A stretch of DNA of 63,399 bases, filler included, from Dimorphilus gyrociliatus (Eukaryota; Animalia; Annelida): NCBI GenBank assembly GCA_904063045.1. It is 4 parts of 4 records of this genome, joined end to end, with 100 filler letters (N's around TTAATTAATTAA, not from the genome) between each part and the next. Parts side by side here need not be neighbours in the genome. Positions count along the whole stretch, not along the records: positions 28,720 to 47,294 come from CAJFCJ010000195.1; 3 more parts are not named here. One strand, given 5' to 3'. The translations under genes were made by a program, and so were the position numbers. The notes below the pieces were generated by a model. It was not told where the DNA came from. It saw nothing but the letters and a program-made list of their open reading frames with translations, and did not search any database. Below are positions 28,720 to 47,294 of this stretch, one piece after another. Position 1 is the stretch's first letter. Every line of letters starts with the position of its first letter.

Positions 28720-29935
28720 GAAAGATGATGAGTTTATTGCAGAAAAGAGAGACTCTGTTAGTATAACCAATGAAGAAAACAATCAACAAACCAAATCAAC
28801 TAATCTAGTATAGAAAGAAATAATGAACAAATAGTAAATACAGCTGAGGAAACCAAGAATAAAACAGCAACTGAAGAAAAGGATAAAAATGAGGAAGAAA
28901 GGTTTACAGATCAAATCAGTGTTGAAAATGATCTTACTGAAATGATGGAAACAGCTACAAATGAAAATGATAACAAATTTTGTTCAAGAGACATTTCAAA
29001 TGAGACAATCATGGTGCTTGTGATAAAGAATCTGTTGTTACAAAATTACATTTGTCAAAAAATTTGAATTAGGATCACCATTAAAAACATCTTCACCAAT
29101 AGAAACTACTAACAATATCTCCATTGATTCTAGTGAACTGGATTTGTTTGATGAAAAAGCCTGGTTGGCATTGGAAGAGATGAGGTCTCAAGATCACTGC
29201 AAAGAAGCAAAAAAAATGGGTATAGATGGAGCCAATGCACTTGTTTTGAGTATGACAGATTGCATCAAAAAATATAAGGGATGGAAAATGATATTGAGGA
29301 ACAATTATAGAAAAGATAAAAAGCTGATTGATATTTATAGAGAATGGGGAAAGATTTCTTGTCAGACAAGGAGGCAAAAAACTTTTCAAAGTTATTGCCA
29401 CAAATATACAAATGAAAACAGAATTTTTTATGATATCTGACAGTTCATTTAGAGATATTCAAGTCAAAACTATCTCAATATAGCCTCCAAATATAAAATT
29501 GCTAAAAATGGAATATTAATCAACATTAGCCAATTAAACTATGAAGATATTTTACCCATTTTAAATAAACTGGAATATTCAATGTCAATATATATTCATA
29601 CATACAAATTTAAATTCTCCTAAAAAACATATGGATTAGCAAAATTTCTAAAGAACAAGTATGGAACTTGCAAGAATGTGATCATAGCCATTCCATTTGG
29701 CACAAAACTATTTTCTGCATACAAAGATATTCAAATGGCAACTAAGAAACAAGCCACTGTTCTTGATATGACTGATATGAGAAAATTGGGATTTACAGAT
29801 AATCCAACTGGAAATTCGAAATGTAAACACCTGACAAAGAAGGCACAAGAATTTTCAATTGATTTAGTAATGAAAACTTTGCAGAATTATCAAAGATCAG
29901 AAAGAGGAAACAATGGACATAGATACATCAACTAA
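28720..29935 (+). CDS. ORF1 of element A: acidic N-part plus putative SGNH/GDSL esterase domain, frameshifted
   Basis: Joining frames gives RIFMISDSSFRDI (block I), ILINISQLNYED (II), YIFIHTNLN (III), KHLTKKAQ (V). Confidence 0.5.
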
Positions 29936-29946
29936 CAAGTATATTA

Positions 29947-32623
29947 ATGTCTGGATTTAATTTCTATAAACAATTAAATACTCAATATGTTGTTAATTTG
30001 AGCAAATATCAGATTCCAAATGATGTCAATAGTTTTTTTAATCTTGGTTTAAAGTTTGTACATGAAAGTATAAAACCAGACAAATGGAAGCAATACACAT
30101 TGTTCAATTTAGAGAGATTCTTTAAAAAAGTATCAATCATTAAAAAACAAAATAAATCAACAAATCTGGAAAATCTTAGATGTATTAACTATCAATGGAT
30201 ACCAAAAGAAGGATTTGAAAGAAATATAACATCTGTTGAAGAACTAGATGATACTGATGATGATGATGGTGGTGATGGTGACAGTGATGAAATGTTACAA
30301 TTTTTCAAAGGATGCAGAAAGGCAATTCAAAGTAATATTTTTAAAGAGAATTCTAATCAAAACTTGGAAAATTTGACAAAGATTTCTTTAAATCTCTGAG
30401 AAAGTTTTTATCATTAGACATTGTGATTAAGCCAGCTGACAAGGATCTTGTGTTGTGATACAAAATACTGAAGATTATATCTACATGTGCAATCAATTAC
30501 TTTCTGATAATAAACAATATTGTAAACTATCAACAACTTCTAATATAAATATTTCTGGTAATAAATTTTTAGAAAAGTCAATTTTCTATTATAAAGACCT
30601 AATTAAAACATTTAAAGTTACCTTGGATGAAAAAGAATATAAACATTTGTTGGATTCTCTGTGTACAAAGAAGCATTCTTTTGAGAATAGAATATTTTAT
30701 GGCTTACCTAAAATACATAAGGAACCAGAACAATGGTTGGTTGATGGTAAAATTCCTAAAGGAAGGCCTGTTGTTAGCAATTTAAGGACAGAATCTTATG
30801 AAATATCAAGATATATCTCACATCACCTCAAACCAATTAGTATACTACATTCTTCATATATTGGTAATTCTAAACAACTGTTGGATGAACTTAATAGAAT
30901 AACAATTCCAGATGATGCTCTTTTGGTGACTCTGGACATAAAAAGTATGTATACAAACATTGATACTTACACTGGATTGAAAGCTGTAAAATATTTTTTT
31001 GAAAAGTATTCCTACAAGCACAGACCTGATGATTTTCTTATTCAACTTCTCAAATTCAACTTGCATAAGAATCATTTTAAATTTTTAGATACAATATACT
31101 TACAAAAGAGTGGTTGTGCTATGGGTCAAAGTTATGCTCCTGCTTATGCAAACTTATGGATGGCTTGGGTGGAAGAAGTGTACCTCTTCAACATTAGACC
31201 TAAACCTCTATTTTATAAAAGATATTTGGATGATATTTTCCTAATTTGGACAGGTAGCATTGATACATTTCATAGCTATCTTCAAAAAGTCAATAATATA
31301 TTAAAAAATTTAAAGTTTGAGGGAACAACTAGTTTTCAATCAATCAACTTTTTAGATTTAATTCTATTTAAAGGAACAAGATTTCTCTCAACAAATCAAT
31401 TGGATCATCTAACTTTCTTCAAAAATTGTGAAACATTTCATCAACTTCATAGAACTTCTTTTCATCCTAAACATATCTTTAAAGGACTTTTAAAATCTCA
31501 ATTCAAAAGATTTCTTAATAACAGCTCCTCTCCATTTCTATTCTTTCAAACTTGTCAAACTGTGATGAAACCACTTTCCAGTCAAGGCTACAGTGCTAAA
31601 GAAATAAGAAAAGCAATACAGTCTGCAATTAAAGACCAAATGAAGAAAGAAAACTATGAAAGAGTGTTGGAAGAAAATAGAAAGACACAGTGGAATATTC
31701 CAAAGGAATTAAGAATATATTTTAACATAAGAAAAAAGATATTCTGCCCTCTAAACATGAATTTCATTTATAGGAAAAACTGTGTAGATTTAATTACAGA
31801 TAACTCAAAAGTATTTCTATTACAATGTAAAGAATGTGGACAAATGATGTACTTTTCTATACAACAACATAAAAAAATCAGCATCTTACAAACACTTAAA
31901 TACCTTCTATCAAGAAAATATTTGGAATTGAATAATATTGACCTAGTAGAAAACTATATCCAGCATCAACATTTTGCAGAAAATCAATTTAATATAACAA
32001 TATTTCCTTATGAACAATTGCAAAGAGATAAATCAACAATTGAAATGAACAGATATATTTATCACTTGAATATGAAAAATGTCATGTATTATCCCTTTGG
32101 CTTAGCCAGATATACCAGTTGTCCAGTATATTCAAAGCTACCATTAATTATGCCTTATAGAAATGATCATGGACCAGTGTTAAAAAAATTAACAAAAACC
32201 TATAAATTATTAAGTGATAAGAATTCCATATTTAAAAACATTCCTCTGATATTTGCTTTTACAAACAACATAAATAGTTATTTTCAATTAATTCATAAAA
32301 ACATTTATTTTAAACAGGAACAAAATATGTCTACTTCCTTATTTCATAAAAGAAATACAACTAGTACAGATTCATCAGAAAAATGTCATTTTTCACTAAA
32401 TAAAACAGGAACATCAACAATTAAACATTTTTATAAAAAGAAGAATGCAGAAGAAACATCTTCACTTAGTGCACCACCTCAACCAGGAAAAAAACCAAAG
32501 TTTGATACAATTACAAGAAAATTCACTATGAAGAGGAAGATGGAGAAGGAAACAGACGAACATAAACCAGTAGTTGCAGAGAAGATGGTTAGAACTGGAA
32601 GAAGAATTAAGAAGAAACTTTAA
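29947..32623 (+). CDS. Penelope-like reverse transcriptase with C-terminal degenerate GIY-YIG domain (element A)
   Basis: VVNLSKY..LGLKF, IKPADK, FYGLPKIHK..GRPVVS, LDIKSMYTNI, GCAMGQSYAPAYANLWM, RYLDDIF, INFLDL, HPKH..KSQ. Two 1-nt homopolymer deletions near 30373 and 30442 split it. Confidence 0.93.
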
Positions 32624-32713
32624 ACTTTCAATATTTTTTAATTAGTTGTTTTCCTTTGAATATTTGTTTTGTTTGCTTCATAATAATTTGCTTTTCACTG
32701 CATATATCTGTAC

Positions 32714-32758
<45 letters not shown>

Positions 32759-32863
32759 TATTCTATGTATTCTTAGATTTGTTCAGTTCATATCTATAAT
32801 ATTCTTTTTGTGTAGAATATACTAAATTTTACTAAATTATTTTGTTTTTATAGATTTTCTATA

Positions 32864-33927
32864 ATGGCAAATAATACTCCACAAAATCAAATTGAAAGAA
32901 TAGAAAATGATGCAATTCTTATCAATCAAATAATTGATATTGAACATTTTTTACCACCATCTTTTCAACAATTTTTTAACTTTGGAACATTTTATAATCA
33001 TCTTCAAAGATTTAGAAGAGATGACAGAAATCATCCTCCAATTTTTGATGCAAGTAAATTTGAAAAAGATACTGTAGACAAACTGATGAAATTTAAACAA
33101 TTTTGTGATGAAAAAATGTGGCTTGTTGAACAACACCAAGTAAATAATATAAATAAACAACAACTTGGAGAAGTGATATTAAGATATTTGAATGGTACTG
33201 ACCAGCTTGTAAGATTTAATAATACAATCAAAGTTAATAGAAGAAAACATTTCAATGTTGGTGAACTACTAGCATCTTTTGCAGATATTGGAGTGAATTT
33301 AACAGAAGGGGAAATGGAAAATCTTATGAAAATTCAACAACCAGCAGTGAAATTTACTACCAACTGTAATTTGCTTCTCTTAACAGATGCTAGTTTGAGT
33401 GATTTGGATTTGTTTCAAATAGAAGATGTTAAGAGGAATATCAATTTTCATGGAAATATTTTGATTGTAAATATTTGTGGATTAACATTTGAAAATTGCA
33501 AAGAAATTTATCAAAATGGAAGATAAAAACTAACATTGTAGCTCTACATATTCCTTTTGACACCATTAATGATATTGATGATAATTTTCCAGCTATTTAT
33601 CAAAGTAATGGAAATATTAAGGAATGTATGCTGTTTATATCATACAAAGTTCAGGATAATTTTAATAATCAACAATTTCTACCAGAAAGGTTAAAAAAAA
33701 TGTTTACAAATATTGTTTATATCAATGGCATTATAAGAGGAGATCCTTTTCATAGAAGACTCCAACAGGACAAGATATCTCCTTTAAGAAATATTGTTCA
33801 ACATTTAATTTTTAATGAGATATTAGTAAACACTAAAGATGTGATAGAACAACAACAAAGAAGAACTGGAAGAAGAAGATTAAACAGACAAGATATTCAG
33901 GCTATAGAGGAACAACACAATGAGTGA
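32864..33927 (+). CDS. ORF3 of element A (~350 aa after one frameshift), SGNH-like without the catalytic Ser
   Basis: Overlapping ORFs 32864-33526 and 33496-33927; homologous along its length to 42790-43860; LLTDASLSDL, ILIVNICGLTFEN, GDPFH motifs. Confidence 0.7.
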
Positions 33928-34961
33928 AATTAACAGACCTATCAAAACTAAATTTCAATCTCTGTATATTTTATATAAACACTTTGATATTTCTCTAGTT
34001 TAAAATAGTAATATTAGCATAATATAACTATGTATTTATATCAATGCAAAATTGATTAGGTGTGTGACACACTGGAATGCCAGAGGCTGACATATCACTT
34101 CTTATATAATACCAAATGTGTCTAGGCTTGGGATACTAAAACTTTTATGTAATACCAGATACTTGTCAAGATAAACTGACATATCTTAGGATATGTCAAT
34201 TACATAACACTCCTCTATATAAGCTACAAGGTCTATCAAACATCATCACTTCAAGAAAATTCTCAGAACAAGAAGGACTGCTCTCTACAAAAACTCTGTT
34301 TAGTGATTCAACATCTACATACTACAAAAGATCATTTTTCTACATCAAACAACTCTGAAAGAAAAAACAAAGTAAGCTATATGTTTGTTTGTTCATTTGA
34401 GAAATTAAAGATACTATAATGTTTTACATTTATGTATCTATTTGTTTATATATGTTCAGGTGACTTTAAGATGTTATAGTTGATTTTCATCAATTTCATT
34501 TCTTTCATTAACACTATAAGACCTGTCAGACAACTTGGATTATATATCTTGCTGTTTAACAGTTCAAAAATTGTTCAATGAGGAACAGGAACAAATGAAA
34601 ATTATAAACTCTGGCATCTTTTGTAAACATTATATACACATTGTACCTACATTATATCTAAACATACCAATAGGACAACAAAAAAAACCATTAGGCAAAT
34701 AACTATATATCAGACCAAAGAAAATTTCAATAACTGAAAAGTAAGCAACTAGATATTACAAAACAAAAGTCATCTTATTGACAAGTATTACAAAGAATCA
34801 ACTTCTATGGTTGATATTCATCCATACATATATAAACCTACAAATACACATACAATTTCAACATCCATACAACAAGAACATTCTTGCAAGGAAGGATTCA
34901 ATTATAAAATTGGTCCTCTCCTCCCCTTCAAGATAGTTCTTAGGTTATACTATCCTCTGAA

Positions 34962-35016
34962 TTGACCCTGATGAGTCTTTGCATTAAAAGGGGAAGACGA
35001 AACCATGGTAGGTCAA
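34962..35016 (+). ncRNA. Minimal type I hammerhead ribozyme 1
   Basis: TTGACC-CTGATGA-GTCTT..AAGAC-GAAA-CCATGG-TA-GGTCAA; predicted cleavage after GUA (35010). Confidence 0.93.
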
Positions 35017-35800
35017 CCATACTTGGCAACCATCTAGATTAATATATCCTAGGTTAAACATACTATTGCAATTTAAAACCAAATCAAAAACAAACAAACA
35101 GACATAAATTGATTAGTGATGGGAAGAGTACTTGTTTTAAAATGTACAATAAGTTCTTACTCTTGCATTCCATTTCATTATGGGATCTTCTGAAAGTTTG
35201 GTGGAAGTTATTTGACTTTCATCAGAACTGAGACCTTAGTGTCTAGTTCAAACCTATATAAAACCTAATCACAAGTAAGAAGAGTCAAGGGGTTTTGAGG
35301 AACAGTACAAGTTGAACTTAACATCTGATCATCACAAATTCAATCAAAAATTAAAAAACATCAACTTTTATCCATTCAAAACAAATAAAAAACATATTTA
35401 CACACAAACATACACACATGCATTCATTGTTAAAAACAAAAGTTCTTATGAATACCATATATAACCTCACAAATTATATAAAAAATTAGGCATCAAAATA
35501 CAACTATCTATATGACCAAAATCATCTTCATAATCCTAATAGGAAACAAACTAAAAAAATTACAAAAAAATTACAAAAAACAAATCTCAACTTGTTGACA
35601 ACTATTACAAAAATCAACTTCAATGGTTGATATATACATTCACAATCACACATACACCTACACATAATGATACATATACATACATATAACAATTTATGAT
35701 TAGGCTTATAACCAAAAACTTACTGCAGGGAAGGATTCAATTGTAGAATTGATCCTCTCCTCCCCTTCAAGATAGTTCTTAGGTTATACTATCCTCTGAA

Positions 35801-35855
35801 TTGACCCTGATGAGTCTTTGCATTAAAAGGGGAAGACGAAACCATGGTAGGTCAA
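35801..35855 (+). ncRNA. Hammerhead ribozyme 2
   Basis: Same sequence as ribozyme 1. Confidence 0.93.
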
Positions 35856-36639
35856 CCATACTTGGCAACCATCTAGATTAATATATCCTAGGTTAAACAT
35901 ACTATTGCAATTTAAAACCAAATCAAAAACAAACAAACAGACATAAATTGATTAGTGATGGGAAGAGTACTTGTTTTAAAATGTACAATAAGTTCTTACT
36001 CTTGCATTCCATTTCATTATGGGATCTTCTGAAAGTTTGGTGGAAGTTATTTGACTTTCATCAGAACTGAGACCTTAGTGTCTAGTTCAAACCTATATAA
36101 AACCTAATCACAAGTAAGAAGAGTCAAGGGGTTTTGAGGAACAGTACAAGTTGAACTTAACATCTGATCATCACAAATTCAATCAAAAATTAAAAAACAT
36201 CAACTTTTATCCATTCAAAACAAATAAAAAACATATTTACACACAAACATACACACATGCATTCATTGTTAAAAACAAAAGTTCTTATGAATACCATATA
36301 TAACCTCACAAATTATATAAAAAATTAGGCATCAAAATACAACTATCTATATGACCAAAATCATCTTCATAATCCTAATAGGAAACAAACTAAAAAAATT
36401 ACAAAAAAATTACAAAAAACAAATCTCAACTTGTTGACAACTATTACAAAAATCAACTTCAATGGTTGATATATACATTCACAATCACACATACACCTAC
36501 ACATAATGATACATATACATACATATAACAATTTATGATTAGGCTTATAACCAAAAACTTACTGCAGGGAAGGATTCAATTGTAGAATTGATCCTCTCCT
36601 CCCCTTCAAGATAGTTCTTAGGTTATACTATCCTCTGAA

Positions 36640-36694
36640 TTGACCCTGATGAGTCTTTGCATTAAAAGGGGAAGACGAAACCATGGTAGGTCAA
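36640..36694 (+). ncRNA. Hammerhead ribozyme 3
   Basis: Same sequence as ribozyme 1. Confidence 0.93.
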
Positions 36695-37478
36695 CCATAC
36701 TTGGCAACCATCTAGATTAATATATCCTAGGTTAAACATACTATTGCAATTTAAAACCAAATCAAAAACAAACAAACAGACATAAATTGATTAGTGATGG
36801 GAAGAGTACTTGTTTTAAAATGTACAATAAGTTCTTACTCTTGCATTCCATTTCATTATGGGATCTTCTGAAAGTTTGGTGGAAGTTATTTGACTTTCAT
36901 CAGAACTGAGACCTTAGTGTCTAGTTCAAACCTATATAAAACCTAATCACAAGTAAGAAGAGTCAAGGGGTTTTGAGGAACAGTACAAGTTGAACTTAAC
37001 ATCTGATCATCACAAATTCAATCAAAAATTAAAAAACATCAACTTTTATCCATTCAAAACAAATAAAAAACATATTTACACACAAACATACACACATGCA
37101 TTCATTGTTAAAAACAAAAGTTCTTATGAATACCATATATAACCTCACAAATTATATAAAAAATTAGGCATCAAAATACAACTATCTATATGACCAAAAT
37201 CATCTTCATAATCCTAATAGGAAACAAACTAAAAAAATTACAAAAAAATTACAAAAAACAAATCTCAACTTGTTGACAACTATTACAAAAATCAACTTCA
37301 ATGGTTGATATATACATTCACAATCACACATACACCTACACATAATGATACATATACATACATATAACAATTTATGATTAGGCTTATAACCAAAAACTTA
37401 CTGCAGGGAAGGATTCAATTGTAGAATTGATCCTCTCCTCCCCTTCAAGATAGTTCTTAGGTTATACTATCCTCTGAA

Positions 37479-37533
37479 TTGACCCTGATGAGTCTTTGCA
37501 TTAAAAGGGGAAGACGAAACCATGGTAGGTCAA
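37479..37533 (+). ncRNA. Hammerhead ribozyme 4
   Basis: Same sequence as ribozyme 1. Confidence 0.93.
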
Positions 37534-38317
37534 CCATACTTGGCAACCATCTAGATTAATATATCCTAGGTTAAACATACTATTGCAATTTAAAACCAAA
37601 TCAAAAACAAACAAACAGACATAAATTGATTAGTGATGGGAAGAGTACTTGTTTTAAAATGTACAATAAGTTCTTACTCTTGCATTCCATTTCATTATGG
37701 GATCTTCTGAAAGTTTGGTGGAAGTTATTTGACTTTCATCAGAACTGAGACCTTAGTGTCTAGTTCAAACCTATATAAAACCTAATCACAAGTAAGAAGA
37801 GTCAAGGGGTTTTGAGGAACAGTACAAGTTGAACTTAACATCTGATCATCACAAATTCAATCAAAAATTAAAAAACATCAACTTTTATCCATTCAAAACA
37901 AATAAAAAACATATTTACACACAAACATACACACATGCATTCATTGTTAAAAACAAAAGTTCTTATGAATACCATATATAACCTCACAAATTATATAAAA
38001 AATTAGGCATCAAAATACAACTATCTATATGACCAAAATCATCTTCATAATCCTAATAGGAAACAAACTAAAAAAATTACAAAAAAATTACAAAAAACAA
38101 ATCTCAACTTGTTGACAACTATTACAAAAATCAACTTCAATGGTTGATATATACATTCACAATCACACATACACCTACACATAATGATACATATACATAC
38201 ATATAACAATTTATGATTAGGCTTATAACCAAAAACTTACTGCAGGGAAGGATTCAATTGTAGAATTGATCCTCTCCTCCCCTTCAAGATAGTTCTTAGG
38301 TTATACTATCCTCTGAA

Positions 38318-38372
38318 TTGACCCTGATGAGTCTTTGCATTAAAAGGGGAAGACGAAACCATGGTAGGTCAA
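38318..38372 (+). ncRNA. Hammerhead ribozyme 5
   Basis: Same sequence as ribozyme 1. Confidence 0.93.
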
Positions 38373-38619
38373 CCATACTTGGCAACCATCTAGATTAATA
38401 TATCCTAGGTTAAACATACTATTGCAATTTAAAACCAAATCAAAAACAAACAAACAGACATAAATTGATTAGTGATGGGAAGAGTACTTGTTTTAAAATG
38501 TACAATAAGTTCTTACTCTTGCATTCCATTTCATTATGGGATCTTCTGAAAGTTTGGTGGAAGTTATTTGACTTTCATCAGAACTGAGACCTTAGTGTCT
38601 AGTTCAAACCTATATAAAA

Positions 38620-38669
38620 CCCTAACCTAACCCTAACCTAACCCTAACCTAACCCTAACCTAACCCTAA
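38620..38669 (+). repeat. Telomeric tract (CCCTAACCTAA)4CCCTAA
   Basis: Strict alternation of hexamer and pentamer, read directly. Confidence 0.9.
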
Positions 38670-38993
38670 GAACAGTACAAGTTGGATTCTATGTCTGATC
38701 ATCCAGCTTACAAAAAAATTAAAACAAAAATTATTACAAAACACAAAAATACTCATATGTTCATTCATGCAAACAAACATACATTGATTACAAAATTCAA
38801 CTTCCACAAGTTGATATTACAAAAAACACACACAAACATCATTAGACATACAGTTACAAAACATTCCCTCTTCCATTCAATATATACACATTCATCAATC
38901 TTATGACAAAAATGGAATGCAAGGCAGGATACAATTGCAGAATTGGTCCTGACCTCCCCTTCAAGGTAGTGTAAGTGAAGCTATCTTCTGAAA

Positions 38994-39043
38994 TGACCCT
39001 GATGAGTCTTTGCAAAAGGGGAAGACGAAACCATGGTAGGTCA
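38994..39043 (+). ncRNA. Hammerhead ribozyme 6
   Basis: TGACC-CTGATGA-GTCTT-TGCAAAAGGGG-AAGAC-GAAA-CCATGG-TA-GGTCA. Confidence 0.93.
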
Positions 39044-39599
39044 ACTATTCTTAGTAACCATCAAAAAATTAGAACAAAAACTGAACATTTTTTCATCAAT
39101 CAGTTGTAGATAGTCTTACTTGTACAGAGTGTTCTTACTCTTGCATTCCATACCATTGTGGAATCTCTTGAAACTTTGGTGGAAGTTATTCAACTTTCAT
39201 CAGAACTTAGATCTTAGTATCTAGTTCAACATTACAAAAACCTAATCAGAAGTAAGGAGAGTCAAGGGGTTTGAAGAACAGTACAAGTTGGATTCTATGT
39301 CTGATCATCCAGCTTACAAAAAAATTAAAACAAAAATTATTACAAAACACAAAAATACTCATATGTTCATTCATGCAAACAAACATACATTGATTACAAA
39401 ATTCAACTTCCACAAGTTGATATTACAAAAAACACACACAAACATCATTAGACATACAGTTACAAAACATTCCCTCTTCCATTCAATATATACACATTCA
39501 TCAATCTTATGACAAAAATGGAATGCAAGGCAGGATACAATTGCAGAATTGGTCCTGACCTCCCCTTCAAGGTAGTGTAAGTGAAGCTATCTTCTGAAA

Positions 39600-39649
39600 T
39601 GACCCTGATGAGTCTTTGCAAAAGGGGAAGACGAAACCATGGTAGGTCA
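39600..39649 (+). ncRNA. Hammerhead ribozyme 7
   Basis: Same sequence as ribozyme 6. Confidence 0.93.
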
Positions 39650-39946
39650 ACTATTCTTAGTAACCATCAAAAAATTAGAACAAAAACTGAACATTTTTTC
39701 ATCAATCAGTTGTAGATAGTCTTACTTGTACAGAGTGTTCTTACTCTTGCATTCCATACCATTGTGGAATCTCTTGAAACTTTGGTGGAAGTTATTCAAC
39801 TTTCATCAGAACTTAGATCTTAGTATCTAGTTCAACATTACAAAAACCCTAACCCTAGTTAGGTATTACACTGGAACACTAGCTAACCAGTTCCCAAAAA
39901 CATTACCAGAGTTGTGTGAGTGGCCTAACCCATAACCCTTACCAAA

Positions 39947-39987
39947 CCCTAACCCTAACCTAACCCTAACCTAACCCTAACCCCTAA
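39947..39987 (+). repeat. Telomeric tract capping the 5'-truncated element B
   Basis: CCCTAA CCCTAA CCTAA CCCTAA CCTAA CCCTAA CCCCTAA joined to RT coding sequence. Confidence 0.88.
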
Positions 39988-42574
39988 ATATCAAATACCC
40001 CATGATGTTAATAATTTCTTAAATCTTGGCTTAAAATTTGTTTATCAACTCATCAAAGAAAAGCAATGGAGAGAACAAGCTTTATTGAATTTAGAAAAAT
40101 TTTACAAAAAAATATCATTTTTGAAAAAGCAAAGTGTTAATTCAAATTCATCAAGTCTCAGATTCATCAATCACAAATGGAAACCCATACACCCTAAAGA
40201 GTATTGTAATCCAGTTATTGTTGAAAATGATGATGATGACAATGATACATTAATGAAACTTTTTAAAGAATGTAAATCTGCTATAAAGAAACATATTTTC
40301 AAAGAAAATAATGGTAAACTGCAAATGTTTGATAAGACATTTTTCTCTTCTCTTTCAAAATTTCTCTCACTAGATATTGTTATTAAGCCAGCTGATAAAG
40401 GATCTTGCATTGTTATACAAAACACTGATGATTATGTCACTATGTGTGAACAGCTTCTTTCAGACTCAAAACAGTATTCTGTCCTATCAACAATATCATG
40501 TAACCAAACAACAGAAAATGATAGCTTTTTAAAACAGTCTATTACTTATTATAAAAACTTGATAAAAAGATTCAAAGTTATGCTTAATGATGATGAATAT
40601 CAAGAACTGTTAGACTCTGTTTGTATGAAACAAAATTTAATCAAGCATAGGATATTTTATGGATTGCCAAAGATTCACAAAGAAAGAGATGAATGGCTTA
40701 TAAATGGAAAAATACCTAAAGGTAGACCTGTTGTAAGCAACTTGAGAACTGAATCCTATGAAATATCAAGATTTCTATCACACTACTTGAAACCAATTAG
40801 TACATTACATGCTTCCTATATTGACAACTCTCAAAATTTTTTAAATCAACTAAGTAGAATTAACATTCCCTCTGATGCTCTTCTTATAACACTTGATGTT
40901 AAAAATATGTACACAAATATTGATACATATACTGGTCTGAAAGCTGTCAAATACTTTTTTCAAAAGTACCCTTCAAACAATAGACCTGATGACTTTCTAA
41001 TAGAACTTCTCCAGTATAATTTGCACAAGAATCATTTTAAATTTTTAAACAAAATATTTCTTCAAAAATTTGGATGTGCTATGGTCAGAGTTATGCTCCA
41101 GCATATGCTAATTTATGGATGGCTTGGATTGAAGAAGTTTTTCTTTTTAATATAAAACCAAAGCCATTTTTCTATAAAAGATATTTAGATGATATCTTTC
41201 TGATTTGGACTGAAGGAGTTGAAAAATTTGTTAATTATCTTAGAAAAGCCAACAGTATTTTAAAGAATCTGAAATTCAAGGAAAAAATTAGCTCAACTTC
41301 AATCAACTTTCTTGATTTGGTTCTCTTTAAAGGAACAAGATTTCTGTCTTCCAATCATTTGGATCATATAACATACTTCAAAAAATGTGAAACATTTCAC
41401 CAGTTACATCGAAATTCTCTTCATCCAAAGCACACTTTTAAAGGATTGTTGAAAGCTCAATTTCAAAGACTTTTTAAAAATAGTTCCTCCAATGTTATTT
41501 TTTATCTAACCTGTCAAACTGTTATCCATCCACTCTTACAGCAAGGCTATCACCTAAAAGAAATAAGAAAAGCAATAAAATCTGTACTGAAAGATGATTT
41601 GTATAGAGAACACTGCCAGAGAGAATTAAAAGAAATATGTGAAAAAAACAATGACATACCTGTGAAGATGAAAATCTTTTTCAACATCTCAAGCAAAATA
41701 TATCATCCTCTTAAATTACAATTCCTTTATAGAAATGGTTATATTAATTTTTTGGCTGAAAAACCCCAGATTTACCTCCTTCAATGTAAAGAGTGTGGAC
41801 AGTTAATGTTTTTTTCCATTTTCCAAAAGTACACAGATGTGAATATTTTTGAAACACTTGATTATTTACTGTCAAGACAGTACTTGAAAATTAAAAATGA
41901 TGAACTAGTGGAGAATTTTATTGAACATGGTCATTTTAATGAAAATCAACAAAATATTACAATATTTCCATATGAACAAATACAAAAAGAAATGTCTCCA
42001 ATTGAAGTCTGTAAACATGTTTATATATTAAATACAAAATATATCATGTTTCATCCTTTTGGTTTGGCAAAATTCACTTCTTGCCAAAATTCAACAAAAT
42101 TACCATTCATTATACCTTTTGGAAACCAACTACAGCCATTGATTAAAAAAATTCATAAATGTTATTGTAAATTTAGAATAGAAAATCCCACTTTGAAAAA
42201 CCTTCATTTGATATTTGCTTATACCAACAACACAAATATATATGTAAAACTAATAAATACTAATACAAGCTATCAACAGCAACAAATTGAATCCACTTCT
42301 TTCGCTTGCTCCAAGAACAATAGCTCACATGATACAAGTACTGAAACATCTTTATTAGAAAAAGCCAAATTGCCAACAATCAAGAACTTCTACAAGAGGA
42401 CAACTTGTCAAAAAGAACCTTCTTACATTCCAGATAAGAAGCCAAAATTGGATGAAACAATCACCAGAAAGTTTAAATCCAATGAGCACAATGAAGGGAG
42501 TTGTGGAAAAAACAAGTGATCCACCTGTAATTAAAAGAACTGGAAGAAGAATTAAGAAGATAGCAAAAAATTAA
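39986..42574 (+). CDS. Penelope-like RT with degenerate GIY-YIG (element B), N-terminally truncated and frameshifted
   Basis: IKPADKG, FYGLPKIHK, LDVKNMYTNI, RYLDDIF, IYLLQCKECG. Missing G at ATGG(G)TCAG (~41083); a further shift near 42480 extends the tail to RTGRRIKKIAKN*. Confidence 0.92.
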
Positions 42575-42789
42575 ACAAAAACTTAATATTAGTTTCTTGT
42601 AGAACATAGAATTTGTTAAAGTTACCTTATGGTAAATTGTAGAAATAGTTAAAACATTTGTAAAAGTTGTAGGCAGTATGTGTAGAACTTCCACAAAGTA
42701 TACATTTATCCCAATATATATATAGAACACATTTTTGAAAAAATACATTTCATTAACCAGTTTGCTTCATTTAAAATAGGTTTATACCA

Positions 42790-43860
42790 ATGGCTTCAAG
42801 TAATCCAATTAATACAAATACTAAAGTGATCATTGAAAACTCAAAAAATGTGATTGCAAATAACATCAATGTTGACCATTTTCTTCCTTCTTCATTTCAA
42901 GACTTTTTCAACTTTCAATTGTATTACAATTGCATAAAAAAGTATATGAGAAATAAAGCCATCCAACCTCCACTATACAATGAGAAGGAACATGAAAAAG
43001 CTCTTCTTACCAAAATGTCACAATTCAAAGAATTTTGTAACAAGGAATTATGGCTAGTTGAACATAATGAACAGAAAAGATTTATTAACACAGAACATCT
43101 TGTTAACTTAATCTATGAGCATCTGAACAAAACAGACAACACTGTCAAACTTGAAAATTCTTTCAAATTAAACAGAAAAACAATTGACATCAGAGAAAAT
43201 ATTATACAGCAACTCCACAGAATTGGAATAAATTTGAGTGAAGATGAAGCTATAAATTCTTTTAAAATACAACAACCAGCAATCAACTTTCCAGATGTCT
43301 TGGATTTGCTAATCTTAAGTGATCATAGTTTGGAGATGTTGATTTGAATAATGTTAGACTTGTTCAGAACAACATCAGATTTCAAGGAAATATAATCATT
43401 TTGAATATTAAAGAATTGTCATTTGCCAACTGTAAAGAAATACTTTTAAACTGGAAGTTAAAAGCAAAGGTAGTTGTTTAAATGTTCCATTTCAAGAAGA
43501 ACATGACACTGATAAACACTTCTACCTGATATCAGAAAATAACTCAATAACAAACATATCATGTTGGTTCAAAAATATCAGCTTCAGAAATCTCCAATCA
43601 ACAACACATTCCAACATATCCTTCAGAAAATGTTTACAAATATTATCAATGTTAACCAAATGATAAAAGGAGACCCATTCCATGCAAGAATACCTCCAAC
43701 TAAATTATCACCTTTAAGGAATGCTGTTCAACAACTAATTATGAATGAAATTATCGTACAGCTCAAACCATTCTCAACCAACAAAACATCCAAAGAACTG
43801 GAAGGAAAAGAAAAAGATACAAGCCAATCAAAACAACAATCTTCAATCATAGGACTCTAA
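42790..43860 (+). CDS. ORF3 of element B, homologue of 32864-33927, frameshifted
   Basis: HFLPSSFQDFFNF, KEFCNKELWLVE, IQQPA, LILSDHSL, KMFTNI..GDPFH..SPLRN shared with A. Confidence 0.7.
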
Positions 43861-44074
43861 TAATTTAAAAATCACAGAACAATCAAAGTAAGTAAAAACT
43901 CTCATAGTCTAACAATGCTAACAATACCAATACTCAGTTACCACTTAGAATTAAATAAAAATAATATTGAGCAAAACTGTAAAGTAAAAGTAAATACAAA
44001 AAAAAATTGCTGGGAGTTGATACAATTCTAGAATTGATCTCTCCTCCCCTTGATTAGTATTCAAAACAATCGAA

Positions 44075-44123
44075 TGACCCTGATGAGTCTTTGCTAAAGG
44101 GAAGATGAAACCATGGTAGGTCA
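44075..44123 (+). ncRNA. Hammerhead ribozyme 8
   Basis: TGACC-CTGATGA-GTCTT..AAGAT (G-U closing pair)-GAAA-CCATGG-TA-GGTCA. Confidence 0.88.
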
Positions 44124-44665
44124 GTTACTCAAAAATATTTTCAAAAATTTTTTACATCATGAACCAGGATATTGTTTTCTCTGTCAAACCTGTGCAGGAG
44201 GTCCACACTCTTGCATTCCATTTGGAACTCCTGAAAATTGGTGGAAGCTACCAACTTTTACCAGGACTTAGATCATAGTGTCAAGTTCAACTTTTATTAA
44301 AACCTTACACAGAAGTATGGAGAGCCAAGGGGTTTTAAAGGACAGCACTAGTCTGATGGGCAAATCATACTCTGGTTCAAAAAAATTTTTTTCATTCAAA
44401 ACAAAAAAGCAATAAAAATATACAACAAAGCAAACTCAATCAAACCCATACACACTTATGCATACACTTATCACAAAAATCAACTTCAATAGTTGATATT
44501 GCACCCACACATACACATGCAACATTAGAGATACACTTAAAAAATTCCATCTAAATACATGCACCCAATCCTATAGCAAAAAATTAAATGCAAGGTGGGA
44601 TCCAGTTAAAGAATTGATCCTAGCCTCCCCTTCCAGATAGCAGTAAGAGAAGCTATACTCAGAAA

Positions 44666-44715
44666 TGACCCTGATGAGTCTTTGCTAAAGGGGAAGACGA
44701 AACCATGGTAGGTCA
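44666..44715 (+). ncRNA. Hammerhead ribozyme 9
   Basis: TGACC-CTGATGA-GTCTT..AAGAC-GAAA-CCATGG-TA-GGTCA. Confidence 0.93.
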
Positions 44716-44897
44716 GTTACTCAAAAAATATTTTTCAAAAAATTTTTTACATCATGAACCAGGATATTGTTTTCTCTGTCAAACCTGTGCAGGAGGTCCA
44801 CACTCTTGCATTCCATTTGGAACTCCTGAAAATTGGTGGAAGCTACCAACTTTTACCAGGACTTAGATCATAGTGTCAAGTTCAACTTTTATTAAAA

Positions 44898-45004
44898 CCC
44901 TAACCTAACCTAACCCTAACCTAACCCTAACCCTAACCTAACCCTAACCTAACCCTAACCTAACCCTAACCCCTAACCCTAACCTAACCTAACCCTAACC
45001 CTAA
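44898..45004 (+). repeat. Telomeric tract of 19 units (10 CCCTAA, 8 CCTAA, 1 CCCCTAA)
   Basis: Read directly; marks the boundary between the retroelement chain and AT-rich flank. Confidence 0.92.
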
Positions 45005-45869
45005 AATTTTTCATTATAGAGCTGTAAAGTTTTTTTTACATTAAACAAAAGTTAGCTAATACAATATTAATGTATTGAATAGGTTTTATATGTTACTTTC
45101 CTCTTTCTCAAATATATATATATATAATTGATTTCATTAAACATTGGAGAGATATATAAAGAATACTTTTATCAATTTAACCACAGCAAACCAAATGCTA
45201 CAATTCAAGATTCCTTTTAAAAGTATATAAAAATATTCAAAGGAATGATTTCCATCAGAACCAATAGAAAAAGTTTTGGGAAGAAGAGGTCTATAAGAAA
45301 AGGATTAAGACAATAAGAAAAATAAACATGGTAAATAAGAAAACAAGAAAAAGGAACAGGAGAAACAGAAGGAAAACAAGAAGAGAAACAAACTCACCAA
45401 AAGGATGAGCAAGCAGAAGAGGCAGAGATGAAGAAAGTGTTATTTATTTTGAAGAAATAGATATTAAAAAAAATGATAAAAATATATATTAACCAAGAAA
45501 TTTGATTCAAACATTTGATAAAAAATTGTTAAACTGAGAAGAATTGATCACTCTTACAAATAACTTTTGTTTTTAGCTAAAATTCATAAAAAAATATTAA
45601 TTATAGTAAAGAATGAAAAGTAATTATTATAAATTTAATACCAACAGCAAGACAGAATTGTAAAGTTATATTATATTATATATTTACTTTAAATTTCAAT
45701 TTTGCCTTAAACTTTAATATATTTTCTTTATACAATTCATCACATTTCTATTAATATTTTTGGAATAAGAAATATTTATGTATTATGCAGAACATCCCTC
45801 TAATTGTTATTATTTTTTCCTGACAATAATTTTGGTTCAAATTTGATCAAAATCGGCCCAGTAGTTGCT

Positions 45870-47130
45870 GAGATATGGATTATAAGAAACATTATATATC
45901 AACTCTATTAAAAGCTTATATAAACAAAAATATTCGATGTTCAAAAAAACTAAATTTGTTAATATAAAAGTCAGAGCTCTGAAATTTTGTACATATACTA
46001 ATATTGATATACCGATTATAAATCTTTTTACAGAATTCAATTATCTTTTATAGTTTGGGAGCTACGTTACGTTAAAGTTTGTATTAGAAGACTTTTTTTT
46101 TAAAAAAAAAGAAAAAAAAATTTTTCATCTTGAGTGATGTCTTAAAAAAAAAAGAACGGCGGTGGTGTCTGTTAATTAGTTTCAATATTACGAACTCAAT
46201 ATTATTTGGTCAGTCTGCCTACACCCCTACACATCAAAATGTAAGTAAAATTGTTAAATTACCCTGATTAATATCTGTTTTTGTAATTAATTTTTGTTGT
46301 ATTTTATCTATTAAAATATGTAGAATGTTATCTGTTGCTTTTTAATTATTTTATTCAATTACTTTACTTTAAATCCCATTAATTTCTGCCAAAAGACATA
46401 AGTTACTTTTGAACACTACATTAAATGTAAGCCTATAATCATATTTTCGTCACAAAATTTTAACTCTGTTATGAATTAAGTTAGAGCTTTGAAATTTGGT
46501 ACATAGATTGTTATTATTACGCCGATATTAAATCTTTTTACAGAACTCAATTATCTTTTACGGTTCAAAAGATATGGCGCCGTCAAGTTTTATTCATTAT
46601 TCTTTATTTGTGAGCCTATATGAAATATTCGATAGGGCTAATCTAACTCTGTTATTAATAATCATAAAGCTTTCAAAGTTGGAACATAGATTAATATTAG
46701 TGGGCCGATTAAAAATCCTTTTACAGAATTCAATTATCTTGTATGGTTCAAAAGTTATGGCGCCGTTAAATTCTGTTGCTATTTCTTCTCCATAGGTCTA
46801 TATAAAATATTCGTTAGGGTCGATAAAAGTTAGTTAATATGTACAATAGAGCTTTGAAATTCAGTTCATATAGTAATATTGGTAGGCCGATTTCAAATCC
46901 GTTTACAGAATTCAATTATCTCTTTTGGTTCAAAAGTTATGGCAACTTTATTTTTTCGTCAATACTTTGTATTTAGGCCTTAAAAAATATTTGTCATCTG
47001 AAAACTAACTTTCTTATTAGTTAGCTTAGAGCTTTGAAACTTGGTATATAGACTAATTTTGGTATGCCGATCTCAAATCTGCTTACAGAATCCAAATATC
47101 AGTTACCGTTTTTGAGCTATTTACAATTAA
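45870..47130 (+). repeat. Diverged ~180-bp tandem repeats (subtelomeric satellite or non-autonomous element)
   Basis: AGAGCTTTGAAATT..GCCGAT..TTACAGAATTCAATTATC recurs at 46031, 46541, 46724, 46906, 47086. Confidence 0.75.
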
Positions 47131-47294
47131 AGTGTTTTACAGTTTGCTGTTATAAATATTTTTATTGTTATGATATTGTTGTGTTCAAAAGTTAATTGTT
47201 ATGAATGTAAGAGTGTTTGAATTGTATATTGGAGTTTTAGTGTGCTTTTTAATAATTTGATTGTAATTATCTGTTTTTAATTAAGATAAAGCTT

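Follow-up and report, generated by a model that had tools for sequence, protein, structure and literature searches.

The window analyzed here is a stretch of 63,399 nucleotides (nt) from the annelid Dimorphilus gyrociliatus (assembly GCA_904063045.1), within which the piece at positions 28720-47294 (CAJFCJ010000195.1) was studied. This piece carries a chain of retroelements of Penelope-like type that alternate with telomeric repeats. Three elements lie head to tail on the + strand: element A, whose 3' part consists of 839-nt units, an array made up of 606-nt units only, and element B, which ends in 592-nt units. C-strand telomeric tracts separate the three elements and lie 3' of each, and the DNA to the right is AT-rich and satellite-bearing; unique or satellite DNA in the piece is confined to the right of the chain. 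All three elements pass into telomeric repeats at the same position of their units, at the end of a conserved domain with two hairpins and far from the hammerhead ribozyme that each unit contains. Coordinates of the features are collected in Table 1.

When internal and terminal copies of all three unit types are aligned from the ribozyme cut onward, the three junctions fall in one column, which confirms the central observation of the original prediction, a common 3' junction site. The run AAAA (38616-38619) is followed by CCC (38620-38622) in A, AAAAA (39842-39846) by CCC (39847-39849) in the 606 element, and AAAA (44894-44897) by CCC (44898-44900) in B. Terminal copies have A4-5 followed by CCCTAA, and internal copies A4-5 followed by CCTAATCA (A, 606) or CCTTACAC (B). 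At the internal sites themselves the sequence is AAAACC-TAATCA in A (35260 and every 839 nt thereafter) and in 606 (39237), and AAAACC-TTACAC in B (44299). The prediction had described them correctly as CCTAA in A and 606 and CCTTAC in B; its equation of these sites with the junctions did not hold to the letter, as all three junctions carry three C and the internal sites carry two. Outside telomeric tracts, the heptamer AACCTAA occurs solely at the internal sites of A and 606 units. The predicted hammerhead cut falls between GUA and GGUCA, and the last shared C follows it by 255 nt in A, 204 nt in 606 and 186 nt in B, close to the ~250, ~210 and ~190 nt first estimated; the junctions are indeed well downstream of the cut instead of at it.

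The orientation of the chain indicates how such junctions could arise. In a telomere, the G-rich strand points its 3' end at the chromosome terminus. Since the + strand here carries the C-strand, the chromosome end is at the left, at lower coordinates, and the 5' end of each element faces it. On the G-strand, each tract continues 3' into an antisense copy of the next element, and this order is the product expected from extending a telomeric 3' end on an RNA template. Because the primer stays attached to its product at a telomere, junctions of this kind record the start site directly. Telomerase healing would set repeats on the opposite side of an element and therefore accounts for the 5' caps, not for the 3' junctions; as an origin of the latter, healing at an AACC seed is ruled out by strand polarity. 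Polyadenylation was likewise ruled out as the source of the 3' ends, there being no A-tail and no suitably placed signal.

Apparent age also changes along the chain. The proximal element B looks older: its units are 97% identical, its first ribozyme is degenerate, and both frameshifts and irregular tracts are present. The distal elements A and 606 look younger, their units being identical within each array and the tract after A a perfect 11-nt alternation. This gradient fits stepwise terminal addition.

The 125 nt that end at the junction are 70-80% identical between the three families, compared with only 19-41% for the stretch from the cut to this domain. Both hairpins of the domain are kept in three of three families: 96.7% of cells are paired, vs. 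25-50% when the partners are slid. An A/U-rich spacer of 13-15 nt lies between the second hairpin and the CC. The junction sits inside the conserved block, and in internal units conservation runs ~60 nt further. Past the site, GGGGTTTT is likewise present in all three families, for a chance expectation of ~0.004 per 40-nt window, and in the local minimum-free-energy folds of A and 606 GGGGUUU(U) pairs with AAAACC. The sequence of GGGGUUU(U) is that of the primer end followed by the first four nucleotides of the product, and it could act as a mimic of them.

Homology to reverse transcriptase (RT) extends in A from ~29331 to 32623, and the Penelope-like RT motifs DKG, YGLPKIHK-type and YLDD are readable in translation. 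An RT search returned 554 matches, and nearly all of the top ones are Penelope-like proteins (E down to 1e-83) that contain RVT_1, either alone or together with GIY-YIG. The closest match is D. gyrociliatus P0001 (46% identity, E 9e-146); the others are endonuclease-bearing Penelope-like elements. A local Pfam scan detected neither RVT_1 nor GIY-YIG. The C-terminal 136 columns nevertheless align to the endonuclease domain of endonuclease-bearing elements (BLASTP E 3e-6; hhalign 95% probability, E 4e-8), and the domain is thus not wholly absent. Five endonuclease-bearing sequences share an invariant Arg pair, the Glu of RE-YWI, the Asn after G-M/L and the Gly of YIG, none of which is kept in A, B or P0001. 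We take the replaced residues to be catalytic positions of the GIY-YIG fold, and by these residues the domain is probably catalytically dead. An endonuclease relic without its Arg, Glu and Asn makes a nick-free, end-primed route plausible. Besides P0001, the nearest database proteins belong to animal elements with an endonuclease, a hint that the endonuclease was lost independently. Both copies have lost one base in the RT region, A inside the DKG motif near 30440 (reading against B) and B in the RT core near 41090, each loss causing a frameshift.

Hammerhead cores number nine in all, one in every unit and all on the + strand, with a helix I of 5-6 base pairs (bp), a helix II of 6 bp and the palindrome ACCAUGGU as helix III; in A, the CUGAUGAG and CGAAAC cores are accompanied by 6 bp in each of helices I and II. 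In their CUGAUGA ... GAAA core, helices and predicted cleavage after H17, the motifs correspond to type I hammerheads of Penelope-like elements. A short palindromic helix III, the dimer-type form, is typical of the hammerheads of these elements (PMC4209133). In Rfam, the best hit was Hammerhead_3 at 16.8 bits, below the gathering threshold of 48.5 (E 0.39 on 201 nt), and a scan of the whole piece was empty.

Comparison of positions i and i+839 shows zero mismatches throughout array A, from 34916 on. The preceding ~230 nt are a paralogue of the matching part of the unit, 66-80% identical by local alignment, with 22 mismatches to the unit within 34851-34913 and none from 34916 on. Such flawless periodicity directly after a paralogue means that the array is joined chimerically to A's own 3' untranslated region (3'UTR), with the boundary at ~34914, ~95 nt ahead of the first ribozyme cut. 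The 606 element comprises two identical units (zero mismatches; cuts after 39038 and 39644; internal site 39237-39245). It starts at GAACAG, 34 nt past the site, and so equals two units minus those 34 nt; it has no open reading frame (ORF) of 80 amino acids (aa) or more. In B, the cuts are after 44118, in the degenerate core, and after 44710, and the internal site at 44299-44304 is followed by TTAC.

Identical units and a chimeric join fit a model in which a single unit RNA serves to regenerate the arrays, through rolling-circle copying or through jumps between cleaved monomers. Such regeneration would agree with the retrozyme model (PMC7761336) and with the recent link between retrozymes and Penelope-like terminal repeats (preprint 10.64898/2026.07.22.740005). 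Element A is frameshifted in DKG and yet has a flawless array, an indication that either a defective template was mobilised in trans or the array was homogenised later.

Table 1. Features of the telomeric element chain, in positions of the window.
Feature	Position	Strand	Remarks
Element A	28720-38621	+	Penelope-like retroelement, defective copy; 5' side cut by edge of piece
RT ORF of A	30455-32623	+	722 aa; relic GIY-YIG-like domain at ~31800-32260
ORF3 of A	32864-33927	+	lineage-specific protein, broken
A's own 3'UTR stretch	34683-34915	+	paralogous to pre-ribozyme part of 839-nt unit
Array of 839-nt units	34916-38621	+	~4.4 copies, perfectly periodic
Hammerhead ribozyme, first A unit	34962-35016	+	cut after 35010; repeats at +839, +1678, +2517, +3356
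Two conserved hairpins	35199-35249	+	just 5' of junction point; terminal copy 38555-38605
Internal telomere-like site AAAACCTAA of A units	35260-35268	+	again at 36099, 36938, 37777
Conserved GGGGTTTT	35289-35296	+	24-27 nt past internal site; complementary to AAAACC
Telomeric tract after A	38620-38669	+	50 nt; CCCTAA/CCTAA strictly alternating; 11-nt period matches 100%
606 element	38670-39848	+	1.94 copies of 606-nt unit; telomeric repeats on both flanks
Telomeric tract after 606 element	39847-39857	+	11 nt
Orphan insert	39858-39922	.	65 nt, between telomeric tracts
Telomeric tract capping 5'-truncated B	39923-39984	+	partly degenerate
Element B	39985-44899	+	5'-truncated within RT N-terminal region; ends in ~1.5 592-nt units
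ORF3 of B	42790-43860	+	broken
Telomeric tract after B	44898-45004	+	107 nt, irregular; 89% matches, 10% indels vs. 11-mer; adjoins AT-rich subtelomeric DNA

The second ORF downstream of the RT, ORF3, shows 39% amino-acid identity between A and B. No Pfam family was found for it, and neither a word search nor an atlas search returned homologues; with exhaustive HMMER, the sole match was an ORF3-like fragment inside a D. gyrociliatus gene model (locus L241, 11473-11830; 365 nt, 70% nucleotide identity). A (TA)22 microsatellite (32717-32761) lies between the RT ORF and ORF3 of A and is absent at the corresponding place in B. Ten window ORFs gave no match by exact look-up in the protein collection, and the RT core as query returned no close fragments. 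Close relatives were limited to two other D. gyrociliatus loci, L001 with a related RT and L241 with the ORF3 fragment, which contain no hammerhead units and no telomeric junctions. L001 (10001-17343) has the closest RT and shows, on one strand, a 2404-aa ORF of which the annotated protein spans only the first 1212 aa; a 1135-aa ORF runs antisense to the second half of this ORF, and no hammerhead or telomeric repeat is found within 10 kb. The conserved 15-mer gave chance matches only in metagenome and genome collections, none extended by blastn, the pattern being too short for collections of this size; two longer patterns had no match in viral contigs.

Within the units, a low-complexity A-rich stretch (38059-38099) has the same letters in each 839-nt unit. 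A reading of TATATAAAA in the A unit as a TATA box was rejected, as it is not conserved in 606 or B. The telomeric repeat itself is a mix of CCCTAA and CCTAA (38618-38669, 39923-39984, 44896-45004), with the six-nucleotide form at both the start and the end of every tract. Strict alternation of the two forms in the youngest tract suggests an 11-nt telomerase template or a regular slip. The orphan insert opens with GTTAGG directly after CCCTA and joins the next tract as GAGTGG followed by CCTAACCC; it has no similarity elsewhere in the piece and no Rfam match, and may represent either flank sequence that was transduced or what is left of another element. Beside the innermost telomeric tract lies a subtelomeric satellite of ~182 nt (45950-47120; 2.6 copies at 76% identity), and diverged copies of it flank the main copies on either side.

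To explain the chain, we propose that Penelope-like retroelements were added successively to the chromosome end at the lower-coordinate side, with the 3' end of the telomeric G-strand serving each time as primer on element RNA and no endonuclease cut taking place. The primer would have ended in GGG in all three additions, and copying would have started at a fixed template position, the last A of the A4-5 run before CC. At this position the primer end would form two to three pairs on CCU (G:C, G:C and G.U), leaving the full ACCUAA:TTAGG duplex unused, and the start site would be set mainly by the conserved 125-nt RNA domain and its recognition by the RT. The ribozyme-bearing units would be retrozyme-like RNAs, with arrays regenerated from one unit template; copying of the array, by rolling circle or repeated template jumps, would then be followed by a switch onto the ORF-bearing RNA. 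Taken as a whole, a stepwise telomere-primed chain with a fixed start at the end of the conserved domain is our best explanation, and we hold it with about even confidence. The original prediction that a telomeric G-overhang primes copying without a nick is partly supported: polarity, age gradient and the putatively dead GIY-YIG relic speak for it, and the docking duplex that it included finds no support in the products.

Several points weigh against this explanation. The sample is three junctions, all from homologous unit families, and their shared position could be inherited: random placement within units would put two further junctions on the same nucleotide with a chance of ~3e-6, but common descent of one ancestral junction is possible despite this figure because the families are homologous. 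With three sequences, covariation in the hairpins is not significant, and the predicted accessibility of the motif is average (68th-76th percentile) and uninformative. Given that ~55% of the repeats in the tracts are of the six-nucleotide form, CCC at three of three junctions has p ~0.17, a hint and no proof as to primer ends. A and B are both defective copies, hence this chain contains no intact enzyme. Finally, the identity of units within arrays could have come about by unequal crossing-over or assembly polishing.

The strongest competitor is an inherited C-rich tail, the route of Athena/Terminon elements, which we consider possible although somewhat unlikely. The template RNA would read through the parent junction into telomeric repeats, the G-overhang would anneal anywhere in that tract, and daughter copies would keep the parent junction. 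The common position would then date to the ancestor of A, 606 and B, and the internal CCTAA would be a vestige or a coincidence. According to PMC6431247 and PMC8557442, this is the known mechanism for endonuclease-less Penelope-like elements. It explains the constant junction about equally well, and suits both the CCCTAA that starts all three junctions, where internal sites have CC, and the internal CCTTAC of B. For docking, a tract of 50-109 nt is also far superior to a 7-mer; transcripts that read through the junctions of the present copies would include 11-109 nt of repeats, and folding of the terminal copy predicts the C-rich tail to be single-stranded. By the same route, the orphan insert that follows the 606 element could be transduced parent flank. 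Left unexplained, however, are the coincidence of the end with the unit's only AACCTAA and the conservation beyond the end point in internal units of all three families, and at the junction of the 606 element the repeat tract from which it would have been primed measures just 11 nt. With three junctions, an inherited tail and initiation at a fixed site are inseparable, and both may operate.

The original prediction went further than a fixed start and had an in-register TTAGG:CCUAA duplex (up to 7 bp with AACCUAA) alone determine it, with ACCUAA as the docking site. In favor of this version, junctions coincide with the motif, and AACCTAA in A and 606 units is found only at the junction point, with ~0.13-0.2 such heptamers expected per unit. 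The products, however, leave the specific docking duplex unsupported. Templating through CCUAA by a TTAGG-paired primer would give AAAA-CCTAA, and all three products are AAAA-CCCTAA, which requires a primer that supplied GGG; aligned so as to give this product, a GGG primer end pairs with C, C and a wobble U only. At its internal site B has CCTTAC in place of ACCUAA, no junction of this chain uses the second CCTAA of the A unit (35535), and the TAA continuation at internal sites has a chance p of ~0.04-0.05 and counts as one evolutionary observation. We therefore regard a start fixed by this duplex alone as improbable. Least probable of all is a DNA-level origin or artefact (unequal exchange, break-induced replication between tracts, or assembly or polishing), for although subtelomeres recombine frequently, the perfect identity of the 839-nt units could reflect concerted evolution or polishing, and the sharp chimeric boundary at ~34914 could be a crossover, recombination cannot create a junction of sense element and C-strand three times at one nucleotide in units that are 20-30% diverged, healing by telomerase would act on the wrong side, and the age gradient fits stepwise addition.

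If copying is primed at a fixed site by the telomere, the units may have a more specific part in it, as telomere adaptors. The GGG tip would prime at a primer-binding-site-like position of a self-cleaved, possibly circular unit RNA, on which the two hairpins would hold the position and the downstream GGGGUUUU would mimic primer and first product; rolling-circle or jumping synthesis would follow, and then a copy-choice switch to the ORF RNA near the ribozyme. We offer this adaptor role as a doubtful, speculative extension. Were it true, the junctions would be the first genomic read-out of Penelope-like RT priming on retrozyme RNA, and the lineage would have lost its endonuclease activity in an event separate from the losses in Athena and Coprina.

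The role of hammerheads in the terminal repeats of Penelope-like elements has been called a mystery, and no priming motif is known for animal retrozymes (PMC7761336). Where Penelope-like RTs start copying, what the hammerheads do and how animal retrozymes are primed are all questions that the junctions described here touch. Telomere-primed, endonuclease-less Penelope-like elements with hammerheads are already known, as in the Athena/Terminon principle. New in this chain are an apparently fixed start point where a conserved 125-nt domain of two hairpins ends, a long way from the ribozyme, tandem retrozyme-like units that are identical within the two younger arrays, an array (in A) that is chimeric with the element's own 3'UTR, and an RT that retains a putatively dead endonuclease domain. 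If the fixed start holds in more copies, it would provide a defined primer-template pair for biochemistry, and telomere specificity would have been reached by a second route, through endonuclease decay instead of domain loss.

Head-to-tail addition at chromosome ends or telomeric repeats is also seen in other RT lineages, including Drosophila HeT-A/TART, Bombyx SART/TRAS and, at uncapped telomeres, endonuclease-independent LINE-1, for which the free end is the primer, with short microhomology. These telomere-specific elements without long terminal repeats (non-LTR) belong to another RT class, depend on poly(A) or endonuclease-dependent targeting, and have neither ribozyme units nor a fixed internal start. 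Telomerase, which has a related RT, resembles the proposed mechanism in that it aligns the 3' end of the chromosome with a site inside an RNA, flanked by structured elements; in contrast to telomerase, copying here would run for kilobases, with no repetition of a short template and no stop at a boundary element.

Among Penelope-like elements, the closest parallel is with the Athena/Terminons of bdelloid rotifers, for which endonuclease-free attachment to G-overhangs has been proposed (PMC6431247, PMC8557442). The published model has reverse-complement telomeric repeats of the template, beside the hammerhead, anneal to the overhang (PMC6431247). Like Athena/Terminons, the chain described here has a Penelope-like RT, a head-to-tail telomeric arrangement with 3' ends toward the centromere, 5'-truncated copies with short telomeric caps, 3' ends on reverse-complement telomeric repeats, and a hammerhead motif in the 3' region. 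In Athena/Terminons the repeats come right after the hammerhead fold, whereas here the junction is 186-255 nt past the cut, at the end of the two-hairpin domain. The ribozyme region also differs in being tandem, with units of 592-839 nt repeated 1.5-4.4 times, and the telomere repeat is ACACCC in Athena/Terminons vs. the CCCTAA/CCTAA mix in this chain. Athena and Coprina are described as wholly without an endonuclease domain (PMC8557442); a putatively dead GIY-YIG-like domain is retained in the chain, which, as judged from its residues, would share with the endonuclease-deficient telomeric kind (Athena/Coprina/Terminon) the lack of a functional GIY-YIG.

Coprina elements of fungi, protists and plants are telomere-associated and endonuclease-less, with short reverse-complement telomeric repeats and hammerheads (PMC8557442, PMC4209133). 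All of these traits recur in the chain, the working endonuclease being absent as far as its residues indicate. Coprina hammerheads have a long helix III and are active as monomers (PMC4209133), whereas helix III here is short, palindromic and of the dimer type, as in metazoan elements. The nearest proteins likewise differ, being those of animal endonuclease-bearing elements.

Metazoan non-LTR retrozymes are non-coding tandem units, each with a type I hammerhead in which helix III is palindromic and so weak that cleavage takes two copies; a Penelope-like RT presumably copies them from circular RNA into complementary DNA of several units (PMC7761336; preprint 10.64898/2026.07.22.740005). The 606 array resembles them in being non-coding and tandem, with two identical units that each carry a type I hammerhead, though it may simply be a 5'-truncated autonomous element. 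Unit size is ~150-400 nt in non-LTR retrozymes vs. 592-839 nt here. Unlike in non-LTR retrozymes, the units of this chain occupy the 3' terminus of elements that carry ORFs and are located at a telomere, where the junction with the primer has been preserved.

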